Shown here: positions 10,954 through 38,619 of the stretch, piece after piece | Position numbering within the stretch: the stretch's first letter is position 1 | Layout of the letters: every line of letters starts with the position of its first letter | Assembly (NCBI GenBank): GCA_965644265.1 | Contig: OZ286472.1 | Span: forward strand, 13,950,001 to 14,014,000 | Length of the DNA stretch: 64,000 bases | DNA from: Glycera tridactyla | Lineage: Eukaryota | Direction of reading: 5' to 3' | Program-made: the position numbers and the translations under genes | Notes under the pieces: model-generated | What the model was told of the DNA's origin: nothing | What the model saw: only the letters and a program-made list of their open reading frames with translations | The model's database searches: none

Positions 10954-11612
10954 AAGCTAAGTTGGTCAAGAACATTGGTGCTGGATGTTTGATGGCGATC
11001 CTGGGTGCTGATGCCTGGAAATGGAGTACTGATGTGAAGTGCTGGTGGGGCCATGCTGCTTGTGTATGCTGACCAGCTATGTTATACAGTTACTCATGTT
11101 CAACCAGTGCCCTGGTGATGACTATGTGTGTTCCATCAACGGTGTCCTCACATCTCCATGTGCCAATCATGAGGACTGCACAAGTGATGCCAGGTTGTGC
11201 AGTGACAGCGTGTACTTGACAGTTGCTGACAGTTGTCACTGGTTATTGCAGACTGTTGTCTACGGTGTTGATGCAGGATCCACTACGCCAATGTCTGATT
11301 GGACCCTGTGATTTCAATGTGCTGTTTTCTACGTGCGGGTTTCGTGTTGACATTGCTTCAGTTCCGACTTATGCCATCATCACTACTTCCACTTCATCGC
11401 CGAGTTGTGTGCATATTTATCCTACAGTCATTGTGATTATTGTGTGCCGATACATCCACTAGATGTCGTGTTCAGCTGCATACTGTACATTCCATACGCC
11501 TTCGATGCAGTGTTTGCCATTATATTTCAAGTTGTTCTGAATTCTACATAGCATAGTGACTGTGTTATCCTGAAGTCGTCTGTTCTATCTGCCGTGTGCG
11601 TCGGTGTTAATC

Positions 11613-14600
11613 ATGGTGTCATTTGGGAAGATCGGTGAGTTTGACCAGGCAAAGGAGCGCTGGGAAAATTATCACGAGCGGCTGGAACTTTTCTTCACGG
11701 CGAATGGTATCAAGGACGATGAAGATGTCAGGAAACGTGCTATTTTACTCAGTGTGATTGGTCCTAGCGCGTATGGTGTGATTCGGAACCTCACTTCTCC
11801 AAGAAAACCCAGTGAGGTTGAATATGGTGATTTGATCAAGGCTGTCAAAGGTCATTTTCAGCCGCCACCGTCTCCGATTGTGGAGAGATTCAAATTTTAC
11901 ACTAGGTTTCGTCAGACAAATGAATCTGTTGCTGAGTACATCGCTCAATTGCGAGACATTTCTGAGCATTGCGAGTTTGGGGAGTCCCTTCCTGACATGC
12001 TCCGGGACAGACTGGTCGTCGGTATAAACAGCGTGTCTATTCAAACAAAGTTGTTGTCCGAGTCATCACTCACATTTGCTAAAGCCTTGGAACTTGCTCA
12101 GGGTTTAGAGGCTGCTGAGAGAAATGCCCGTGATCTGAAGTGCGAGTTTCCGAAACCTCAGCCATCTGACAGTGTTCACAAGATGCAAACACCTCGGGAC
12201 AGGTCTTCTTCAAAGAGTTTTTCGTCTCCCAATCCAAAGGGGGGAGGAGTCATACCCTCTTGGCTCCAGGGAAAATGTATGCGTTGTGGTGAAGGTGGAC
12301 ACAAAGCAGATGAATGCAAGTGCAAAAATGTCACATGCAGGTATTGCAATAAACAGGGTCATATTGAGCGTGTTTGCCTCAAACGATTGTCGAAACCAGG
12401 TAACAACGTGGTATCCAATGACAAAGGACATAAATCACATTTTGTAAACCTTGAAAACGTTCAGGATGAACTACAGTCACCACATTATTCGTCAGATGCT
12501 GCACAGCACAGGTACCATGTTCCGAGTGCTTCAAGTTCCCAAGAGTATGATATATTTTACCATCGTGGTACTACTAGTGAAGATCCACTGCGTGTCAACA
12601 TGCACATAAACAATGCTTTTGTGAACATGGAAATTGATACTGGTGCCTCAATCACGCTCATGAGTGAACAGACATACAAACAGCTGTGGTCGAAACAGAC
12701 ACAAAATCGCCCACAGCTCGACTCTGCAAAGGTAGTTGTGAGAACATATACAGGGGAGCAGGTAGATGTGTTGGGAAGTGCCATGGTCCAGGTTCATTAC
12801 ATGCAAAGTGAACAAACATTGCCTATTCATGTTGTTCGAGGTACAGGTCCGACATTGCTTGGACGGGATTGGCTACGCCAATTACGTCTAAACTGGTCAG
12901 AGATCAAATATGTTGATTGTGAGTCTCACACGGGTAGATTACAGCAAATTCTCAACAAGCATGTAAAGGTTTTCAATGATGAGCTAGGGACATTGCGGAA
13001 CATAAAAGCAAAGATCATTGTTGATGAAAATGCTGATCCGAAATTCCATAAGGCCCGACCTTTGCCATATGCTATGCGTGAAAAAGTAGAGGATGAGTTG
13101 GACAGGTTGCAGCGTGAAGGGGTCATTGCACCTGTTGAATTTGCTGATTGGGCTACTCCCATTGTAGTTATCACCAAACCTGATAAATCTGTACGTATTT
13201 GTGGGGACTACAATGTAACCATAAATAAGGCCACGAAAATTGACAAATATCCACTCCCACGTATTGAAGATTTGTATGCCACAATATCTGGTGGTCAGCG
13301 GTTTACCAAGCTTGACCTACGTAGTGCCTATCAACAGATGCTACTCACTGATGATTCAAAACCCTATGTTACCATCAACACACATCGTGGGTTATATTCT
13401 TATAATCGCTTGCCATTTGGGGTAAATTCGGCTCCTGCCATATTTCAAAGAGTTATGGACAACATTGTGAAGGGTATTCCACATACCACAGTCTACCTCG
13501 ACGACATTTTGGTCACTGGTCACACTGCAGATGAACACTTGACAAATTTGAATACAGTTCTCCAATGTTTGGAGGATGCTGGGTTACGTTTCAAGAAAAA
13601 CAAATGCTCATTCTTTGTCAAAGAAATTGATTATCTTGGTTACAAATTGGACTCAGTTGGTCTACATCCACAGAAAGAAAAACTGCGTCCAATACTTGAG
13701 GTACCAATCCCTCAGAACAAATCTGAACTTCAGTCCTTCTTAGGAATGGTGAATTACTATTCCCGTTTTATTGCCAACTGCTCGACACTGTTAGCGCCAC
13801 TTAATGCCCTGCTCCATGATGATGTACCCTGGATTTGGAATGATAAAGAGCAGAAGGCTTTTGAGGCAGCTAAACAGGCACTTACATCTTCTGAGGTATT
13901 GGTCCATTATGACTCAAAGAAACCACTTATCCTGAATTGTGATGCCTCTCCTTTTGGAGCATCTGCTGTTCTCTCTCACAGATTTAGTGATGGTGCTGAA
14001 AGACCTATTGCCTTTGCCTCTCGAACTCTTTCCAGTGCAGAAAGAAACTACAGTCAGTTGGACAAGGAAGCATTGGCAGTAGTGTTTGGTGTCAAGAAGT
14101 TTCACCAGTATGTTTACGGTCGAGAGTTCGAAATATATACTGATCACAAACCATTGGTGTCAATATTTGGAAAAGAGAAAGGTCTGAGCCAAATGACTTC
14201 CCCTCGTATGCAGCGTTGGTACTTGTCGTTATCTGCGTATGATTATGAACTTCATTTCAAACAAGGTAAATTGAATGGAAACGCAGACGCGTTGAGTCGA
14301 TTACCTCTTCCAGACACACCTGTTGATACACCTGTTCCCACTGAAGTTATTTTGTTGATGGAGAAACTTGACTCATCACCCATTAACTCACACATGATCA
14401 AGCAGTGGACCACTCATGATCCTGTGTTGTCAGAAGTTTTGCAGTATGTCATGCAGGGGTGGCCACCAGACAAGATTGATGATGAGAGATTGCAACCTTA
14501 TGCCCAACGCAAGTTTGAAATTAGTACGCAAGGTGGCTGCCTATTGTGGGGATCTAGAATCATTGTACCACCTCCGGGGAGGGTTAAGATCCTACAGGAA

Positions 14601-15650
14601 TTACATGCTTGTCATCCTGGTATGTCTCGTATGAAGAGTTTTGCTCGAAACTATGTATGGTGGCCTAAATTGGACAGTGACATTGAATCTATTGTGAATG
14701 CATGCCATGAATGTCAGGTGAATCAGCGCACGCCACCCGAGGTACCAATGCATCCCTGGCAGTTTCCACAAAGGCCCTGGGATCGAGTTCATATAGACTA
14801 TTTGGGTCCGTTCATGAACACTATGGTTCTTGTATTGAAAGATGCTCATACAAAATGGATTGAAGCCATACCCGTGAGCTCCGCAACTGCTGAAAACACT
14901 ATTCGTGAATTGCGCCACATTTTCGCGACACATGGAATTCCCATGTCTATTGTTTCTGACAATGGTACCACATTTACTGCTCGTGAATTTCAGGAATTCT
15001 TGCGAAAAAATGGTATTCGTCATATTACTTCTCCGCCCTATCATCCGGCATCGAATGGTCTTGCCAAAGGTGCGGTGAAAATAGTCAAGGAAGGCTTGCG
15101 GAAACTGACTGATGGCGATTTGCAAACAAAACTTGATCGGTTCTTGTTCAAGTACAGAAATACACCTCACTCCACAACTGGGTGTACCCCTGCTGAACTT
15201 TTGTTCAGGCGGCGACCCAGATCTCAATTCGATCTTTTACGACCTGATTTAAACGTCAAAGTTCAGGACAAACAATTCCGGCAGAAGGAATATCATGATG
15301 CTCACACACGATCTCGCGTTTTCGAAGGGGGCGACCCTGTGTATATCAATAGACAGATGCGAGGTACACCATGGTTGCCAGCTGAAGTTAGGGGCCAGGA
15401 AGGGCAGATTGTGTACACCGATTTGCCAGATGGGCGTGTTGCTAGACGACATTTGGATCAGGTAACAGCCCGTACAGATCAAACAGGTGGCGAACCTGAA
15501 TCACCTGCTCAAAACCCTCCACAGATTGCTGACATACATGGGGGTCAGCCATGCAGGCAGGTTTCTGGAGAGCCAGGGTTTTCTGCAAGTCCAATGCCAT
15601 TGCGTCGCTCTGATCGCATTCGACGCCCTGTAGAGAAATTGAATCTGTGA
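11613..15650 (+). CDS. Gag-Pol polyprotein (1345 aa from ATG 11613)
   Basis: Two CCHC knuckles (CMRCGEGGHKADEC, CRYCNKQGHIERVC), aspartic protease DTGAS, RT YLDD, RNase H CDAS, integrase HHCC and D,D(35)E core with E replaced by K. Confidence 0.95.
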   Translation: MVSFGKIGEFDQAKERWENYHERLELFFTANGIKDDEDVRKRAILLSVIGPSAYGVIRNLTSPRKPSEVEYGDLIKAVKGHFQPPPSPIVERFKFYTRFRQTNESVAEYIAQLRDISEHCEFGESLPDMLRDRLVVGINSVSIQTKLLSESSLTFAKALELAQGLEAAERNARDLKCEFPKPQPSDSVHKMQTPRDRSSSKSFSSPNPKGGGVIPSWLQGKCMRCGEGGHKADECKCKNVTCRYCNKQGHIERVCLKRLSKPGNNVVSNDKGHKSHFVNLENVQDELQSPHYSSDAAQHRYHVPSASSSQEYDIFYHRGTTSEDPLRVNMHINNAFVNMEIDTGASITLMSEQTYKQLWSKQTQNRPQLDSAKVVVRTYTGEQVDVLGSAMVQVHYMQSEQTLPIHVVRGTGPTLLGRDWLRQLRLNWSEIKYVDCESHTGRLQQILNKHVKVFNDELGTLRNIKAKIIVDENADPKFHKARPLPYAMREKVEDELDRLQREGVIAPVEFADWATPIVVITKPDKSVRICGDYNVTINKATKIDKYPLPRIEDLYATISGGQRFTKLDLRSAYQQMLLTDDSKPYVTINTHRGLYSYNRLPFGVNSAPAIFQRVMDNIVKGIPHTTVYLDDILVTGHTADEHLTNLNTVLQCLEDAGLRFKKNKCSFFVKEIDYLGYKLDSVGLHPQKEKLRPILEVPIPQNKSELQSFLGMVNYYSRFIANCSTLLAPLNALLHDDVPWIWNDKEQKAFEAAKQALTSSEVLVHYDSKKPLILNCDASPFGASAVLSHRFSDGAERPIAFASRTLSSAERNYSQLDKEALAVVFGVKKFHQYVYGREFEIYTDHKPLVSIFGKEKGLSQMTSPRMQRWYLSLSAYDYELHFKQGKLNGNADALSRLPLPDTPVDTPVPTEVILLMEKLDSSPINSHMIKQWTTHDPVLSEVLQYVMQGWPPDKIDDERLQPYAQRKFEISTQGGCLLWGSRIIVPPPGRVKILQELHACHPGMSRMKSFARNYVWWPKLDSDIESIVNACHECQVNQRTPPEVPMHPWQFPQRPWDRVHIDYLGPFMNTMVLVLKDAHTKWIEAIPVSSATAENTIRELRHIFATHGIPMSIVSDNGTTFTAREFQEFLRKNGIRHITSPPYHPASNGLAKGAVKIVKEGLRKLTDGDLQTKLDRFLFKYRNTPHSTTGCTPAELLFRRRPRSQFDLLRPDLNVKVQDKQFRQKEYHDAHTRSRVFEGGDPVYINRQMRGTPWLPAEVRGQEGQIVYTDLPDGRVARRHLDQVTARTDQTGGEPESPAQNPPQIADIHGGQPCRQVSGEPGFSASPMPLRRSDRIRRPVEKLNL

Positions 15651-25817: not shown

Positions 25818-27133
25818 GAATATTGAGGTCATTTCCTACTTAGGGCCAGGCCTTGACCATTACAGATAGAAAAGCAGTCTCAGATGCGGGATTCCCATAG
25901 AGGGGGTTCTGTCATTGCTGTTGTCACTACAGACAGCCAGATCGTTATTTCAACCTGATAGGTCGTTATCTCTCCTCAGATCGTTATCCGTATCTCCCCC
26001 CCAGACAGGGTGATAGATAACTGACCTAAGAATCTCGGTCAGATAAATAACGATCTGAGCCAACCTGGGCTCAGATCGTTCAGGTTGTTCTGTATGTTTA
26101 CACGAGATGGCTCCAGTAGTTGTGAGCTGGGCAGAATTATCCCCCATGGGGTTGACGCACCAGATAGCCCTGCACCACTACACCACAAGCGGTTACAGTA
26201 CATGCCCCAGCAGCCTGTCACCAGGGCTTGTATAGGGTAAGAGGGCGCACTTCTCCCGATTCCTGTAATGGGGTCAATATCCCTCCCCCTTCTCTCATAC
26301 TTATCGTGGCCATCTCCACATCTCCACTACACAGAATTTATATTGCTACTGCATTACCAGCACTCTTGAGCATCTCCCAGCTACCCAAATAGTCAATATA
26401 AATGACATAATTTATCTTTACACAAATTGGAGATGATAACATATGATGAATCATCATATAATTATAGTTCTTTTATTTCTGTGTTATCAGGATTCTTTGG
26501 GGTGTTCATGTGAAATATGGAGGAGGTCATATGGATGTATTTATACATTCTTCCCATCCTGCCTGCCTTTCTGTCTGTCTGTCTGTCTGTCTGTCTGTTT
26601 CCCTCTCCCTGTCCAAATTATTCAATTCCAAAAAACTATCATACTCATCATATCCCATGTTTTATAATTTGTGTTGATCTCCAGCAGTGGGACCATCTCG
26701 CTTTACATTCAACATTTTGATGCAATAATGTACTTAATTTCTCATAAATGAGTGTGCATGTTTNNNNNNNNNNNNNNNNNNNNNNNNNNNNNNNNNNNNN
26801 NNNNNNNNNNNNNNNNNNNNNNNNNNNNNNNNNNNNNNNNNNNNNNNNNNNNNNNNNNNNNNNNNNNNNNNNNNNNNNNNNNNNNNNNNNNNNNNNNNNN
26901 NNNNACAGGCTGCCTTTGTGGAGAGGTTGTTTACAGTTGAGAGAATTACTGTAGCTTGAGGTCCCCTGTATATGCCGGTGGACTTTGCATAAAGGTGATT
27001 TTTAGCAGGTTGTGCTGTAATTCCATGTTTGGGCCCAGCAAATCTGACCTACATGTTTATGAATTGCATATATCAGAAAAACTGAATTACCTAACAATTT
27101 TCACTTCCCTGGTCACACCTACAAGCATGTCAT

Positions 27134-27134
<1 letters not shown>

Positions 27135-27175
<41 letters not shown>

Positions 27176-27340
27176 TTTTTAGTGATAGAAATCATGTCAG
27201 AGACATATTTCCAGATTGTACTGGCAACAGGTCCATGAAATGTGTTCCAAATGCCCAAATTATTTTTTGGCTTGTATGGGATTTGAACCATCAACCCTCC
27301 AGTTTGGCACCCTCGCCAGCAACAAACTGCCAACGCTCTT
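27135..27340 (-). mobile_element. tRNA-derived SINE-like element with (TG)n tail; 3' part repeated at 27453-27554
   Basis: B-box-like GGTTCAAATCC on the - strand near 27280 and a (TG)n tail. The second copy runs into an N-gap. Confidence 0.35.
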
Positions 27341-28153
27341 GTCCTCTGCCCCACGGCAGATCCACAAAAATGGATCTGCAATGGACGCAGTTAAGCCAGA
27401 GCGCTGGCATTGTGTTACCCCCAGAGGTCAATGTATCACAAAACCTGGCACTCACACACACATTTTTTAGTGATAGAAATCATGTCCGAGACATATTTCC
27501 AGATTGTACTGGCAACAGGTCCATGAAATGTGTTCCAAATGCCCAAATTATTTTNNNNNNNNNNNNNNNNNNNNNNNNNNNNNNNNNNNNNNNNNNNNNN
27601 NNNNNNNNNNNNNNNNNNNNNNNNNNNNNNNNNNNNNNNNNNNNNNNNNNNNNNNNNNNNNNNNNNNNNNNNNNNNNNNNNNNNNNNNNNNNNNNNNNNN
27701 NNNNNNNNNNNNNNNNNNNNNNNNNNNNNNNNNNNNNNNNNNNNNNNNNNNNNNNNNNNNNNNNNNNNNNNNNNNNNNNNNNNNNNNNNNNNNNNNNNNN
27801 NNNNNNNNNNNNNNNNNNNTTTCAAAATTGGAGGCATTTGTCCCCTTAAATTTGACACTCAATTCAAAAAGTGCAAACTCTTGCTGTCCTAGGGGTATTG
27901 TGGCCCCTGATTGCCTAGCAAAGGGGCCCAAACTCACAAAATGTGTTAAATGCCCCCTGGATACAACCCTGTGGCATGTTGTGCAAATACATGCTGAGAT
28001 GTAAGAGATCCAGTGGGTTGCTATGTATGCAGTCACTAATGTGCAGACCCCTGCACACCTCCTGCCAAAACTGGCTATCAATCAAATGAGATCTACTCAG
28101 CAGATAAATGACTTTGTGAACAGTATTTTCACACTGATATTTTAAGGCAATTA

Positions 28154-28310
28154 CAGTCGAACCTGCTCTCGATACCACCTCTCTATAAAGACCACCTGAG
28201 CTGCGACTGTAGTATTTTTAACAGTAAATGACCTCTCTATAAAGACCACCTGCCCATAAAGACCGCTTTTTGATGCAACCAAAGGTGGTCTTCATAGACA
28301 GGTTCAACTG
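28154..28310. mobile_element. pogo/Tc1-like MITE, family A
   Basis: TA|CAGTCGAACCTG...CAGGTTCAACTG|TA. Confidence 0.9.
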
Positions 28311-29326
28311 TATATCCAAATTTACCATGACATTGCTTCTGTATAGCCTTTGAATTATCGGTATCAGTTCTACCTGATGAGGATAACGGGAGAGGGTGAA
28401 TATCAAAGCCCTATCAACATCATGACAAAATGCTCATGGTCAGCAAGTTGTTTATGTAACAGCTCACTTCCCCCTGTCAAAGGTCATTGAGGGTAGCTGA
28501 GATGCCATAAAACCATAGAACTTTATCTCTCTAACCTAGCAGAGGGGAGGCAGCATGCGCTATGTACCTCTATGCATAAAACTCATTATGTATCCATCAC
28601 CCCCCCCCCCCCACACACACACACACAACACTGATAGATAACACCTGTTGTCAACAAGTGAGTCACAGCATGAAGCTTCTTCAAGATCTTTCCTTTCCCT
28701 GGGGTTGGATATCCAGGAATAAATTGTCTTATGCACAATTCATTCTAACACTGACCCCTGATTTTTTTCAATTTCCACTAAATAATCAGATGTTTTTGTG
28801 TCCCTCCATCACCATGTCCAAGGAATCAGCCATAGCAAACATCGCCTGGTCATTCAATAGAAAACAGACAAAAAGTGTCAATAATCAAGAGATCCATGAA
28901 AAGAGAATGAACCCACATTGCCAATTTTTGCCAGTAACCTTTTCCAATGCCTAGAAGTGTAGGACCTGGTTGAATATTCATCCAAACACAGCTTTTAGTG
29001 ATACTTGTGACTGCTGATTAATGAAGGTATCCCCACAAATCTTTATGCTACAGATATCACACTTGTCTTTTCTCATGTTGATAGCCTTCAGGCTAGCCAA
29101 TACATGTTTTTCCAGTGGTGTCTGAGTTATTGAGAGGTGCTATTCCACATCTGTTCATGGGGATGGAGAACCTGATCTTTGACAGCAAAAATGACAATAA
29201 AAATCCAGCACAGACTGTGAATCACTCCCAACAGATTCATGAAATATTAATTGACATTATGCAATTGAGAGCCACAAACTGATTTCAGGCATATTGGTCC
29301 AACTATACATATAGTCCATTTGTCTA

Positions 29327-29381
<55 letters not shown>
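29327..29381. repeat. (CAGA)n microsatellite
   Basis: Direct reading. Confidence 0.95.
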
Positions 29382-29382
<1 letters not shown>

Positions 29383-30462
29383 TGGACAATAGACAGTGCT
29401 TTATTTTTGCACAACAGGCGGTTTACCAGCAGTGCTCATGGTAATATAGCAAATACAATCGCGACTAGAATCAGCCACACGTGGCTGATATTCAGCTGTG
29501 ACCTGTTGAGAAAATCATGGATTATTGTCATTATATATATAGTGAATATATCCAAGACTAAGCGGGTTTTTGGCGGAAATATATAAAATATCAGAGTAGG
29601 AATGCTCATTACATCTTGGTAGACCATCAGAATACCTTAATTGCATACTGATGTCTCAAAATCACTAATGGACAAGAGAATATTCCTGAATTTCAAGAAT
29701 TTCCATAGAGAAACATCCAAATGGACAAGAAGATACTTTCAGATTACAACTCAAGGGGGTTTCCCTTTCCAATATTCTCTTTTAAATGTTACAAGACAGA
29801 CAGACAGACATGCCTATCAGATAGCTGGATGGATGAGTGGATGGGTGGATGGATGGATAAATGGAAGAGCAAGAGAATGGGAGAGAGACAAAGGGAGAGA
29901 GAGAGGAACAGACAGAACACATGCATGCACATGCAGGTACACACACACAAATACACAAACACCCACACACACACATGCAGTGATGGAGGATTTGTGCCAT
30001 GCGCATACGCGACTCTCAAATTCTATGCAAGTTTCACATTCCATTCCCAGACCGAGGCTACCAGGGTAAACAGGCTCCGCCCACCCTCCTACTACATTGG
30101 AAAAGCATGGCAACTGCAACAGCATCATCACTTTCTACACCTAAAAGCAATAGCTATCCCTCCTGTTCTGTGCTGGGATTCCAAGCATCTTGAGTAAAAC
30201 ATCCACTTGCCATACCAAAAATGTCCCTCAGATGTACGAGTCAGAAAAGAGTGGATCACAGTAATAAGAAGAGATGACAGGCCAACAGGTCCCCGTGGTC
30301 GCACTAGTGAGTGTTGATACGGGGAGAGCAGTGAGAGGGAGTTGCACCTCCCATGGTAACAGGGTGCATCCTGTACCCCTACTACACGTAATTTGACCTG
30401 GACTGTGGTCAGCTGCTCTAATCTGTATCCAGCCTGGGTCAAATCTGATTGAGAGGGGAGGG

Positions 30463-30498
<36 letters not shown>

Positions 30499-32488
30499 AT
30501 GCACATGCACATGTGCACATTCATTATGTGAATGGGGATGGTTATTTCATCATTTCACCAGCACCAGTGGGCTATATTGAGAAGGGTGGAATTATTCATG
30601 ACCATTGGATCACCAACAGGTGGTAGTTCATGATTTTTCCCCAGAGATTCAAGTGGTCATTTCTGACATGATGCATGCATTCATTTGTGTCAATTGGGCC
30701 TACCTTAATGGAAACAAATTATATTGCACCAAGGAGAGAAATATTCAGGAATCGAGGCAATTATCCATCAGTGAATAGGAATGGTTATGGGTAAAAAGGA
30801 ATGAAATAGAGAAAAAACTATCCAGGAAACAGCCGCACAAAACAGCAATAACCATTTCCATGGTAGGAAGGACACTGAAAATCAAGTTGACTNNNNNNNN
30901 NNNNNNNNNNNNNNNNNNNNNNNNNNNNNNNNNNNNNNNNNNNNNNNNNNNNNNNNNNNNNNNNNNNNNNNNNNNNNNNNNNNNNNNNNNNNNNNNNNNN
31001 NNNNNNNNNNNNNNNNNNNNNNNNNNNNNNNNNNNNNNNNNNNNNNNNNNNNNNNNNNNNNNNGAATGGAGGGGTTAAATGGGATAGGAGTCCATTCAGT
31101 CTGTTGTAAATTAGAGGGCAATAAAGTAGCAGGGGGTCAAGTGGCCGGACATCAGGCATCAGCACCAGTGTTTCACCCTGTCTTACCCCCCTCCCCACCC
31201 ATGTCCCCATGCAGCTGGCCACACTGCATACTGAGACCGCATGTTACTCAGTTAAACCAGATCTTTCCTCTCCTCTCATCTCATAAATGTAGTCTTCATC
31301 AAAATAAGTGACACCTTTGGAGATGTGCCTGGACCCTGGTGCCTCTGAGGTAGATTTGAATTAGTTAACAACAAAAGAAGAGATGAAAGTTGGAACCTTT
31401 AAAAACTTTGGGATCACTGTGATTACAAGTCATGATGCTAGCACATGGCAAATGTTTACCCTTGTAGCCTCGCTCTGGCTACCCACTTAATATTCATGAG
31501 GCAATATTAAGAGTCCCGCATGTGTTTATGTCAACCCACCATGACCTGACCATAGAGTAATGACCCTGTCCCTGAACACCCCAATCCAGATTGGCTGGCA
31601 GCATGATTAATTGCACCAGCTGCCAAAAATGAGTTCAATGTCGAGCTTTTCTCTCTGTGAATGCACTATAGCCATAGAGTAATGACCTACAATCCTAGGG
31701 TGATTACTCTATGCTATAGCTGAGAAAACAGAAGTAGTCATAAATATGTTTCTCTAATTATCCACTGGACAGAAAAAGGAAAGATCTCTTATTTTAATAC
31801 AAAATTTGGAAGGATGTTTGTTGCAGAGAATATTGAAGGGTTTGCGAGGAGAGGCTGCATCTTATCAGCATGGTACATGTTTTTACTCGCAATTGGTGAC
31901 CTGTGGCTTGCAACGTAGAGCCCTTTCATATGAGATGAAAAACTGTCTTGGCGACCAAAAAAGTGGCTGGTGACCAAATTAAAGATCAGTGTGCTATTAA
32001 ATATAGTGCCTGGCGACCAAAGATTCTTAGAAGCCAGCTGGCTACAAAGACGTGCTGTACTATAAATTTTTACTGACTATTCATGGAAACACATTTTGGT
32101 CCAACTAGGCCTTTCTCACCCAATATGCAAACTCTGCCTCTCATATGAAAGCAAGGCTACACTCACAAGCTACTCACACCATTACCACATGGCTGGTCAG
32201 TAACATAGCATTTGTGTGATGCTGGACCTTGATGGATTAAATCGATTGTATTACATGTATTATTACCATCTGACAAAATAACATATCGAGAGGAAGTGCA
32301 TGCTGAGCAGCATAAAGATGTTTGTTGTTGAACATTAAGTCTTCACTCAGGAGGCCACTGGTTCTGACTAAAATGACAACTGCCACGGATAGCTACCATC
32401 TCTACTGAGAGTAGAAGGCCTTCCCTTCCCCAAATCTTTAATCGTCAGTACTGGCTTGTAATGATCCAGTGTGTGTGTGTGTGTGTTT

Positions 32489-32536
<48 letters not shown>

Positions 32537-32625
32537 CTACGTACTGAAAAAATTGAAAAGAATCATCAATATGTTGATGTTAGAGAGTTGTATTCCATGA
32601 CAAATAGCCCCTCAAAGTCACTATA

Positions 32626-32770
32626 CAATAAATCCTCTCTTGGGAGACTGCCCTAAATGCCAACCACAAGGGGTCTCTCAAGAGAGGTGGTCTCTCATTG
32701 GAGGTATATTTGACTATGTCAAATAAAAAGAATGATCCCATGAAAAGCAGTCTCAAAAGAGGTTTCACTG
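32626..32770. mobile_element. pogo/Tc1-like MITE, family B, degenerate left end
   Basis: Right end AGGTTTCACTG|TA. Internal similarity to the 39024 and 52587 copies. Confidence 0.75.
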
Positions 32771-32808
32771 TACACTGAAACCTGGGACAAAAGCTTCTCG
32801 AAGAGAGA

Positions 32809-33030
32809 CAGGGCTCTACATTAACTTTTTTCTTCAGCTGTCCTTCGGGCAGGTGAAATAGGGTTTTTACCTGCCCTCCTGGTCATTTTCACCTGCCCTC
32901 CTGCATATAATCATAACCCAAATAATGATCGAGTACCTGCCCATCGGGCAGGCAGATCGATGAAATCACTTGCCCTAACAGCAAATCTGCCTGCCTGTGC
33001 CAGTAGGGCAACCATTAGCGTAGAGCCCTG
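32809..33030. mobile_element. CAGGGCTCTAC-ended hAT-like MITE (ACCTGCCC subrepeats)
   Basis: 11-bp perfect TIR with direct AGAGA flanks. Related copies at ~42176-42397 and ~39890-39975 (partial). Confidence 0.8.
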
Positions 33031-33150
33031 AGAGATCCCCTGCTTTCAGGGACCACTATTTGGGAGCCCCGCCTCTATTCGAGATAATCTAATATACCTT
33101 TAATAGAGACTTTGAATAGACTTGTTTCATAGGACTATATTAGTGATATA

Positions 33151-33299
33151 CAGTCCAACCTGTCTATAAAGGTCATCTTTGTTTGCAGCAAAGTGTGACC
33201 GGTGGTCTTTATAGATAGGTAAATTACTGTTGAACATACTATCACAGTCCATCTCAGGGTGGCCTTTATAGGCAGGTGGTCTTCAGACAGGTTCAACTG
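33151..33299. mobile_element. pogo/Tc1-like MITE, family A
   Basis: TA|CAGTCCAACCTG...CAGGTTCAACTG|TT. Confidence 0.85.
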
Positions 33300-36200
33300 T
33301 TTATAGGATGGTCTCTTGTCCCAGGTTTCATTGTGTTCCTACATTGATTCATACGGTGAAATCTGCCTACTCTCAGCTGAGCCTATACTCTATGTAGGGG
33401 GATATATGGAGAGGGGATGGGGGGGGGGGGGGGGTGTCACTGCAGGTGGATATTAGGATAGCACCTGACCGTCATTAGCCTATTTACACAAGTTGAGATT
33501 GGAGTTCTATTATTTCATTACCAGCCCAGTCATTTGATGGAAAACAAGTTATTAGTAGCTGTACTGAATAAAAAGAAGAATGATTCCTTTGCTCAGCAAT
33601 ATCCCACAAGTGAGGAGGATTAGGAGATTCATCTGTGTCACTATCTCCGACTTGGGCATCCTGTGCATAACACAAATCTGCATATTGGGATCAGTGGGGA
33701 AATGGCGGATCACATTGGAAATCAATTATTGGATGATTCAAATAAATAGCATTCACACCTCTACCAATCTCACATGAACATATCTAATTTATAGTAACTG
33801 GTTGGAGGCTGACACTCAAGCCCCAAGGAAACAGGTTGTGTATTGTCATTTCATTAACACCCCCATCCCCCTCCAAGGCTAACTCCCCTCTCAGTCATAG
33901 GTCCCTCCAGACCATAGAGTTAGAAGAGGGTATACTCTATATATTCAGCTCTATGCTCCCGACAGAATTACCTCAGCCAGAGGGAGAAGTGTGATCTCAT
34001 TAAAATGCACAGATCTCTAGTAGGGCGGATTTGATGGGTGACCACCTCATGAGGAATCCAAGAGTGATAATAGAGACCCGACAATTTCTGTGGTCCACCA
34101 GCTCCCTCATATATGGAATGTACACATTGGCCCATCTTGATACAAATACAATCAAACATGTTCTAATCTAGGGCTCCATGCTGGGACCTCCCCTATTGGT
34201 ACGAAAAGGAAAACTGATAGATAAGGCAGGTGATTTTTGGAACTGCCTACCCTTTCAAAACAGTCTGTCACCCTCCCTCACATCTCTCAATGTACACATT
34301 AGCCCATCTTGATACGGATAAAGTAAAACATGTTCTAATCACAAGGTCACTCAAATTTATGAAACTGTGACTCTGAGGTATATGCTCAACACTGGTCATG
34401 AACACTTGGATAATCTGAGCTGAAATGAAAGCCAGAAATGTAAAAGTTTCATGCCTGTTCCATGTGCATTTGGCCAAACTAACTGCGTATAACCATCACT
34501 GAATTGTTTCTCAAGGCAGGTAACTCCCCTCTTTGCATTATTTATGTATTATTCAGCTATTATATCCAATACAATGATTCAAATCCCACCATTTCATGTT
34601 CTCATCATAGTTGGGACCCATGATCTTCCATCTCCGTCACATATCCGGTGGGACTGATGGTAAGTGCGCCATGATCAGAATGATAAACAACAGAGTTTTT
34701 CCTGGTAAATCGTCATGTAGACGTGTAATCGCAGCAACACCGAATCTCGGATGTTTTGTTGTGAAATTTTAGTTTGGTATGATAACAGAAGATTTGATGG
34801 TATTTTCTGCATGTTCAGAAATTGCTCATTGTGTCAAAAAATTGCATGTTTGGAATTGCAAAACCGATCATGCAAAATCTTTTTTTTGCAATATTTCCGC
34901 ATTCAAAAATCATAGGAAATTCATTCATGAAGTAATTCAAAGAATAATCATGGAACTAAACATATGAATATATTCAGTCAATACGAAATATTTTCTTCCA
35001 TGTGGAAAATCAGCAATAATTGCTTTCGCTATACCTCAGAATGAGAGAATTTTTGCCAGTTGGTAGATATTTAAAGTATAAGTTAAAACAGAAAAATTAT
35101 TTGATTTGATGGGTTGCTAAGCTATGAAGAAACATAGTCATCTTAACTATTTCTATTTTTTTTCATTTCATTTCAGGAAAAAATTATCCTGAGAAATTTC
35201 GTTAAGCTTGCTAGCCAAAACGGTCGAAAAAGCATCAACAACCACTTGAAACTTGATTTGTGGATCAAATCAAGAATCCTGCAAAGCACTATTTATATGA
35301 AAAACTTTGGTTCTTGATGAATAAAAACTGAATTTCATTTAATGATAATAAGGCCTAAAATATTGATGAAGAAAAAAATATGAAGAAAGTGAAGGCCTGA
35401 TGTTATTCAAATACACACATTTTAGTGTTGTTGTAGTTGTTGGTGGTGGTGGTGGCGGCAGCAGAGGTGGTGACCTAGTAGCTGAGAGATGAAAGGAGGG
35501 CCAATCATCCTATAGCTCAAGTCAGGAAAAGTCAGATACCCCTTCAGGGTGTGAGGTTGAATATGAGCCAGTCAGATGTCCTTCATGCAAGAGGCATTCT
35601 TGATAGTTTTATTACGGCCAGAATGTGCAAGTTCAACTCCCACTATAAACCCATCCGATTACCATGGATGAATGCTTATCGCTTGGGCTAGGGGGTGGGG
35701 AGAAAGTCCAGCTGGATAGACCTATGACTGCTCTAACCTTTGCCCTCTTAGAGGTCATATTTCAAACACCCCACATACTTTATTGCTGGGTCATTTCACC
35801 AATGTAGGTGGTCCTGAATTTCACTCTTGCTGCCATGGTAGAGGTCCACATATTTGAGTGAAATGTTCTCTAGTCTTGAGGCATGGAAGTCTATATCAAG
35901 GTTGGTGTTTTCTGAGTACATGAATCGAACATTACGAATGATAGTGAAATCCGCAATACAGATTGCCCTAAATGCAGAGATGCCAACCATTATGATCTTG
36001 GTGTAATGATCCCTCATTATTAGCAAACATTTTGCCATATTATGTGTAATTTTGATGGATGAGATATTGAGGAATCTCTTATTTCAGTATTGCAAATATT
36101 GCCATCATTACTTTTAGAGATTGCCATCAGTACTAATTTCGGTCATCAGAGGTTGACATCCCTGTGTATGTGATTGAAATGTGGCCTCTCAAAAAAGATA

Positions 36201-38619
36201 GGCTCTTGTTCGTGGTTCCATTAAAAAGAGGGGGATTCCCCTCTTCTTTCATGGTGGGACCATGAACAATCAAGGCAAAGTCGGACAAGTCATCAGTGAA
36301 ATACCAGGTCAGGGTTTTGGGCACTTCAAATTTCACACTCCTGAAGAAGGGAAACATCTATGTACACATGATGTTTAACAGCATGTTTCAACCCACAGGA
36401 AAAGGAATGCCTTGTATTCAATTAAAGCTTTATAGAGAGGNNNNNNNNNNNNNNNNNNNNNNNNNNNNNNNNNNNNNNNNNNNNNNNNNNNNNNNNNNNN
36501 NNNNNNNNNNNNNNNNNNNNNNNNNNNNNNNNNNNNNNNNNNNNNNNNNNNNNNNNNNNNNNNNNNNNNNNNNNNNNNNNNNNNNNNNNNNNNNNNNNNN
36601 NNNNNNNNNNNNNNNNNNNNNNNNNNNNNNNNNNNNNNNNNNNNNNNNNNNNNNNNNNNNNNNNNNNNNNNNNNNNNNNNNNNNNNNNNNNNNNNNNNNN
36701 NNNNNNNNNNNNNNNNNNNNNNNNNNNNNNNNNNNNNNNNNNNNNNNNNNNNNNNNNNNNNNNNNNNNNNNNNNNNNNNNNNNNNNNNNNNNNNNNNNNN
36801 NNNNNNNNNNNNNNNNNNNNNNNNNATTAAGAGGGCTGGAATTGGATCTGAAACAATGAGTAGGCTCCTGGATATTAAATCACAGAATTCTGCAAGAGTA
36901 TCTCGACAAAACTAAAAGGCAAAATATTCAAATTTTCAAAAATATTCTTCATTTAAAGTATTCATATTGTTTGATAAGTATGATAAATTGCAGGACAGGG
37001 ATGACCAGGCCGCTGTGAACTTTGTAAAATTCCTTCACAATATTTCATCATATCACTGGAAATGTTATATCCCCATGTATTACTCTAGCTATTTGGAGAT
37101 TTCTCTGAATTCACCTCTTTCCAAAATACTATTTCTGAGTTGTTTGCATACAGACTCAATAGTAAAAAAAAACTCAGGCAGGTGGGCTATTTTCATTCAT
37201 GGGCTACCATAAATTTTCACCTAAAAAAAAAAAGTTTAAAGCTTCACTCACTCATCAAAAGAAATTATCATCACTTATTGTCCATCCATTGAAAATTCTC
37301 TGGTAAACAGCAGGGGGACTGTGATGGAAGTCTTTTTGTCTGTCAATATTTCAAAACAGTGAATCCAAGTGAATTGCCTTGAGGATATACTGGTGCATTG
37401 GAAATACCGTATTTTTTCACTTCCATAATATTCTGCTTTTGTGAAACCTACTATGGAGCCTAATTGCTGGTATGTGGTCTTTAGTCCCCCCCCCCCCCCC
37501 CCCCCCCACACACACACATCTCGGCATATGTCATTATGTAATGTTAAACAAGAAAAGAGCATCTCCCACTTGACTTGGGGAGCAGTGAGGAGAGGGGTAA
37601 TGTTGTTCTATAAATATTAACAATGTCTCAGGTGCTGTGCCTCAAAATGCCACTGGATTTGTTTCTTATATTTCCGTTAGTTTCAGAGTAGACTAATACA
37701 GGTACAAATTTCAGTGAAAGTGGGGACAAGTGCCATCTCGTGCTAAAATCATCAACTACTCATCCATCCTTAGGTCGTTATTCACCCGAGGGAGAGATAA
37801 CGATGTGGCGCTGAGATCGTTATCTATGTGACCGACTTTTCTGGAGATCACGATGTCAGCCCAGGCCGTCATTTGTTGCCAATCACGACCTTGACTTCGT
37901 GATCTCCAACCAATAACGATCTAAGGAGCAATAACGACCTACCAGGTTGAAATAACGATCTGGCTGTCTGTAGTGTGTCACTACATGGAGTTGAATCCTC
38001 ATGGATCATGATCTCTGTAATTTGGCTGGGTAACACAAGCTCACATATCAGACCTAGTGACCTACTGACCACGACCTTTAACACTCATGTCCAGATATAG
38101 TGGGATACTTGAGGGTTATAGTATTGATCCCATACTTTGGGTCTATCAGAAATTGAGAGGCAACATTTGGATTTATTTCTGAATCAATCATCTCACTGCT
38201 CATTGTCATGATTAGTGACTAGTAGAGTTGAACGAGCCTAAGTCAGATGTTGGATTACTGTTACTCTGCGACTCATCTGTCAGTTGGGGTTCTCAAAGTG
38301 AGCCCTATATAGACAGAAAATGTCCATGCTAACTATTTTGGTGTTGAGATCATGGAAATCTGAGTGTCTTGACTTTCATAAATATTCACCTTCAGCTGAG
38401 GACCCGGGCGGAGGAGTCTTGAATGATCCCACACATGGGTGTCACAATATAGCACAAATGGAGCTGATGTGATGTTAAACCAGAAACAAACAACCAAGCA
38501 AGCAGCTAATCAGAATGAGTGGAGATAAGGCACAGAATATGCATGTGATTCGATATGTTTACTATGACACAAGCCACGTCAAATCTCCTGCTGCTCTGCC
38601 AGTGTTGGATATATGGGTA

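Follow-up and report, generated by a model that had tools for sequence, protein, structure and literature searches.

Large, probably non-autonomous transposons with CACTA/CMC-type ends: a complete copy from a young and dispersed family in Glycera tridactyla

Plant non-autonomous CACTA (En/Spm) elements, such as maize dSpm/I and the large Tgm/Tpn1-type elements, have CACTA termini within terminal inverted repeats (TIRs) of 13-28 nt, make 3-bp target-site duplications (TSDs), carry short subterminal motifs arrayed in direct and inverted orientation and include multi-kilobase members that are moved in trans. The subterminal repeats of En/Spm are transposase-binding sites. Among animal elements, SmTRC1 is 4.5 kb long and has a 54-bp TIR with a CACTA core, a 2-bp duplication and a Transposase_21 protein; SmTRC1 and the related CACTA-related TRC transposons of animals and fungi are present in tens to hundreds of copies, mostly non-integral (PMC1636069). 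Chapaev transposons, also of the CMC group, make 3-4-bp TSDs, have invariant 5'-CAC...GTG-3' termini and are widespread in invertebrates; Chapaev3 elements insert at TWA, and the non-autonomous Chapaev derivatives described are MITEs (PMC4079192).

We analyzed a 64-kb stretch of the 2.04-Gb Glycera tridactyla assembly (C34:13950001-14014000), referred to here as the window, in which positions without a contig prefix are numbered. A preliminary description had proposed that young CACTA-type ends in this window enclose older host DNA in a possible cargo-carrying macro-transposon. We find instead that the 12,051 bp from 25925 to 37975 very probably make up one complete, large non-autonomous transposon with CACTA/CMC-type ends, which belongs to a family that is young and dispersed. 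This family appears to be a new one of known type, and its superfamily is called from structure.

The left TIR, which begins with CACTACAG, occupies 25925-25987 on the plus strand, and the right TIR, located by inverted-repeat alignment and a terminus search, occupies 37913-37975 on the minus strand, where the same CACTACAG start recurs, giving CACTA...TAGTG termini within TIRs. The exact 33-nt inverted termini that had been described are indeed present, and the inverted repeat reaches 63 nt at 94% identity. The 33-nt terminus has two exact sites in the window, 25925-25957 (+) and 37943-37975 (-), compared to 0 matches in 100 shuffles of the window. There are no further termini of the CACTACAG type in the 64 kb, in agreement with the earlier remark that neither end has an intact partner nearby. 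The two ends can be aligned over ~190 bp, including the inner motif CACGAGATGGC at 26101-26111 and its complement GCCATCTCGTG at 37732-37742, both as previously reported. The reported subterminal repeats were likewise recovered as the motif RTCGTTAT, which occurs in direct and inverted orientation at 25941, 25962, 25980 (+) and 26047 (-) in the left subterminal region (25925-26111, plus strand) and at 37774, 37816 (+), 37797, 37913, 37931 and 37952 (-) in the right one (37732-37975, minus strand). Twelve sites were observed where 1.3 were expected for the whole window; 10 of them are no more than 130 bp from the left end or 200 bp from the right one. These arrays are putative transposase-binding sites.

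Both outer flanks read TGT, at 25922-25924 on the left and 37976-37978 on the right, as claimed, and thus give a 3-bp TSD within the 2-4 bp found across the CACTA/CMC group. The preliminary description had cautioned that a 3-bp match arises with a chance of 1/64. That caveat is removed by 19 other complete copies with both flanks readable, 17 of which have perfect 3-bp TSDs of varied sequence (including CAT, CCT, GCA, AGA, TAC, CAC, CTG, GAA, TGT, ATC, GTG, ATA, CAA, GAT and TAT), and we therefore regard TGT as a real duplication. Of the remaining two copies, one has a 4-bp duplication (TGCG) and one an imperfect one. The observation that the target is itself followed by CACTACA also held, in that TGT plus CACTACA forms a 10-bp direct repeat at 25922-25931 and 37976-37985. 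This mimicry of the TIR start by seven bases of the right host flank is unique to the window copy among the 19 checked copies, and a search of the window for a TIR that would pair with the CACTACATGGAG right flank found none.

The target site of the family is without consensus sequence, which argues against PIF/Harbinger and Chapaev3, both of which use TWA. More generally, the ends could come from another superfamily with 3-bp TSDs (PIF/Harbinger, Academ or Zator type), with the CACTA start a coincidence, a reading to which the copy with the 4-bp duplication and the lack of a transposase tying the family to CMC lend some room. We consider it very improbable. The TSDs are of any sequence rather than TWA or TAA, and the combination of a CACTA...TAGTG terminus, long TIRs and subterminal motif arrays is a hallmark of CACTA elements. 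A 3-4-bp TSD with CAC...GTG termini is, moreover, a hallmark of Chapaev within CMC (PMC4079192).

The two subfamilies described below share a 21-nt TIR pattern, which matched 161 forward and 164 reverse termini in the genome (325 in all, or ~160 elements), and the reversed pattern, used as a control, gave 0 matches. Two TIR subfamilies were distinguished: the exact type of the window copy, with 129 termini, and a sister type with 206, which reads CAGTCCGTKAT where the window subfamily has CAGATCGTTAT. The 33-mer terminus of the window copy is exact at 76 termini genome-wide. Queries made of the first 206 bp at the left end and the last 476 bp at the right end each returned >300 candidate genome matches, and identities among the 40 scored for each were 97-100% for the left query and 93-98% for the right one. 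The matches listed contained 76 pairs of plus and minus termini, in two sets of 39 (spans of 9.8-26.6 kb, median 14.5 kb) and 37 (7.1-20.4 kb, median 11.0 kb). At 12,051 bp, the window copy is a typical, rather short family member. None of these 76 listed genome-wide pairs was shorter than 7.1 kb, so the ends are not complete short MITEs, an outcome that had been named as one that would overturn the macro-transposon proposal. For a non-autonomous family, the absence of derivatives below 7 kb among the 76 pairs is unusual. Copies differ pairwise by ~3%, and the window copy lies 2.0-2.4% from the consensus; the ~2% distance of copies from the consensus suggests a burst that may date to a few million years ago, on an uncalibrated scale.

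The interior was mapped by match coordinates, with three interior queries against the genome, and a second copy of it, which the preliminary description had proposed to look for, was found many times over. The left arm of the family body (25925-26763, plus strand, as are all body segments given here) is common to 29 other copies at 87-96% identity, and most of these 29 left-end loci run on into 26905-27174 or 27981-28480. Sequence at 26905-27554, and in a wider delimitation at 26963-27980, is present in a subset of copies only; it holds (CA)20 and a duplication with a 288-bp period (27161-27266 and 27449-27554, 98% identical) extending into the second N run. Further body segments lie at 27820-29396 (colinear in other copies, 92-96%), 29794-30006 (also colinear), 31516-32808 (85-92%, with (GT)n at 32469-32535) and 33029-36433 (colinear in many copies, 90-95%), followed by the right arm at 36826-37975, which is common to right-end loci at 92-97%. 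The blocks 28000-29396, 29794-30006, 31516-32808, 33029-36368 and 36369-36433 occur in the same order and orientation, at 85-96% identity, inside at least 20 other TIR-bounded copies.

These colinear copies lie on many chromosomes and have the same ends and TSDs of their own, and because of them the proposal that two young CACTA ends, whether solo ends or two short elements, bracket or mobilized ~11.6 kb of older local host DNA is refuted for this locus; we give it next to no credence. Because the copies have colinear interiors in common, independent insertions of solo ends are likewise excluded, and the 76 pairs include no short MITE-like one. In favor of the proposal, the interior contains microsatellites and short repeats and no transposase, and among copies the terminal 200 bp are somewhat better conserved (1.3% divergence) than the inner arm (2.8-3.7%). 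Better-kept termini are expected, however, if only copies with good ends go on moving, which fits selection for transposition competence. In a direct comparison with the copy at C4:100369985-100390653, counting substitutions only, the ends are diverged by 2.9% (left end) and 2.3% (right arm) and the interior by 1.9-3.1% over five blocks, which gives interior and ends the same age and leaves no room for an older interior. An interior derived from a host gene or a single-copy donor, and either specific to one copy or older than its ends, as capture of host DNA would leave, was not found. By sequence comparison, then, the interior is the family's own body and not captured local host DNA. What stands of the original proposal is a CACTA-type insertion that moves ~10 kb of non-transposase DNA as a unit; the older local host cargo does not.

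Several short repeats within the body also occur outside the family: one of ~110 bp at 32623-32754 and two of ~110-165 bp at 28148-28315 and 33145-33305. In other copies, all three turn up close to the first N run. Such repeats probably explain the thousands of initial candidates returned by the interior queries.

Other features are particular to the window copy. A nested younger repeat of ~1.5 kb lies at 30007-31521 (boundaries approximate) and includes the third N run; many copies outside the family match it at 96-99% identity (e.g., C29:46280515-46282074 and C10:83438062-83439619), and ~5 bp (CGCAT) are repeated at both of its junctions. A nested 222-bp MITE at 32809-33030, with inverted termini CAGGGCTCTAC...GTAGAGCCCTG, is absent from other family copies and has relatives in the flanks of other loci (L020 and L023). 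This MITE and the 1.5-kb young transposon entered the window copy after it had landed. The segment between two (ACAG)n runs at 29397-29793 is absent from other copies, which join its two sides directly, and the genome hits that were scored contained nothing else resembling it. Elsewhere in the window, an apparently intact Ty3/Gypsy-type LTR retrotransposon lies at 11604-15650 (+), with a 1348-aa open frame that encodes a zinc knuckle, protease, RT, RNase H and integrase.

Four N runs mask 962 bases of the window copy, and the masked letters and their equivalents in other copies were left out of the analysis, as were the hits to the window's own locus (L001, L031 and L061); only distances between flanking matches were used. 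The assembly locus C34:13976500-13982392 spans three of the runs yet has no N. For runs 1, 2 and 4, the flanking sides have the same order and orientation in other family copies, where they are separated by 73-500 bp, 205-930 bp and 640-775 bp, respectively; near run 4 the window seems 250-650 bp shorter than its relatives. For run 3, the nested repeat provides the comparison: its other copies have the two sides in colinear arrangement, in most cases with 24-450 bp between them. The colinear flanks of all four runs support the contiguity of the window copy, as judged by these alignments. The three runs spanned by the N-free locus resemble true-length masks more than gaps in the assembly.

No coding capacity for transposition was recognized in the window copy. 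Pfam gave no credible match for the ten longest ORFs (the only one listed, at E = 0.08, is far under the cut-off), and a scan, one by one, of the 107 stop-free stretches of at least 45 aa on both strands revealed no transposase domain; two matches to small unrelated domains, at E ~8e-4, are at chance level. Between 31312 and 35795 there is no ORF of at least 70 aa, and the element gave no hit when scanned for tRNAs and Rfam families. In the genome, Transposase_21 (PF02992) was detected at a single locus, C26:82104001-82104441, within an intact 968-aa ORF (C26:82102516-82105416, minus strand). This ORF was weighed as a candidate partner of the family, and none of the listed family termini lies near it. 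A tblastn search with the 968-aa protein gave no match in the window or at 59 family end loci. Its relatives in the genome comprise one decayed paralogue (C13:45803671-45805381) and ~25 distant loci of 23-28% identity, mostly intact frames of 680-1113 aa that fall into small groups of equal length (709, 681, 680, 710 and 690 aa) and look like several young CMC-like transposase families. Intact CMC-like ORFs among them lie at C42:32302132, C13:91024075 and C51:45551617 (709 aa), at C26:37228682, C1:2291728 and C11:53125090 (681 aa) and at C17:28999916 (1113 aa). No Transposase_21 or DDE-core match fell within family copies that have listed coordinates; the genome protein searches matched exon by exon and scored only the best candidates, so that absence in them is weak, suggestive evidence. 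For the window copy, then, neither the element itself nor a TIR-sharing partner yielded a DDE transposase. Since no transposase is tied to the family, its CMC membership is assigned on structure, namely ends and TSD. The missing transposase is as expected for a non-autonomous member.

An autonomous origin of the family was also weighed. The preliminary description had offered a decayed, intron-rich autonomous element as its alternative, and in a broader form either the window copy, decayed or internally deleted, or the longer B-type copies would go back to an element whose transposase gene was intron-rich or is unrecognized. Multi-exon, alternatively spliced genes are possible in animal CACTA-type elements (PMC1636069), and copy lengths reach 26.6 kb. 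The longest and the B-type copies include C11:76606061-76632676, C11:113145119-113168746, C31:96849767-96864231 and C4:124347234-124362157. Moreover, at least seven copies (C31:96.85 Mb; C4:124.35 Mb; C11:58.70, 68.78 and 113.15 Mb; C26:56.87 Mb; C18:26.31 Mb) diverge from the window copy at a shared breakpoint, 35972, beyond which they carry 4.8-9.7 kb in place of the window's 0.85 kb (e.g., C31:96856835-96863075). This extra DNA is either nested repeats that were later amplified or the family's missing coding part, and it could encode a protein invisible to Transposase_21-based searches. Against an autonomous origin stand the empty domain scan of the window copy, the lack of Transposase_21 or DDE-core hits inside the copies with listed coordinates and the empty tblastn search, and a former ORF should remain visible at ~2% from the consensus. 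Taken together, these results make descent from an autonomous element of this kind unlikely, and they lend no support to the decayed intron-rich form.

Our preferred reading, a large non-autonomous family, would work as follows. The transposase, a DDE enzyme from the CACTA/Mirage/Chapaev group, would be encoded at another genomic site and act in trans. It would bind the subterminal RTCGTTAT arrays, cut at the CACTA termini and reinsert the complete element through a cut with a 3-bp stagger. One ~10-kb non-coding form may simply have happened to be the amplified substrate. A more speculative account, which we hold to be quite unlikely, would attribute the faithful ~160-fold copying of a 10-kb non-coding body, with short derivatives absent, either to a requirement for that body in cis or to a transposase unrelated to Transposase_21 that is encoded in the additional 5-10 kb found in the longer copies. 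If the longer copies did encode such a transposase, a new enzyme lineage would be mobilizing a family with CACTA ends.

What had appeared to be a cargo-carrying macro-transposon becomes a defined repeat family that amounts to about 2 Mb in ~160 copies, and whose definition by TIR, TSD, motif and two subfamilies is useful for annotating the host genome. Its recent activity makes it a test case for the mobilization of very large non-autonomous DNA transposons in animals, and it poses the second question of why miniature derivatives never arose. To a specialist the family is a modest curiosity rather than a surprise, ordinary apart from its large non-coding body and its absent short derivatives.

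Compared to the plant non-autonomous CACTA elements, the family has the same CACTA termini, 3-bp TSD and subterminal motif arrays in two orientations, and it likewise has multi-kilobase non-autonomous members, which would be moved in trans. It differs from them in its animal host and in its TIR of 63 nt rather than 13-28 nt; in addition, no host-gene fragments were recognized inside the window copy, and no cognate autonomous element was found. With SmTRC1 and the TRC elements it shares an animal host, long TIRs with a CACTA core and a copy number in the tens to hundreds, with mostly non-integral copies; unlike SmTRC1, it spans 7-27 kb and makes a 3-bp duplication, and the window copy has no Transposase_21 domain. 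Unlike Chapaev3, it has no target consensus, and in contrast to the non-autonomous Chapaev derivatives its elements are ~10 kb long and are not MITEs. To Chapaev as a whole the likeness is one of end structure: the family has the same TSD size and the same CAC...GTG termini.
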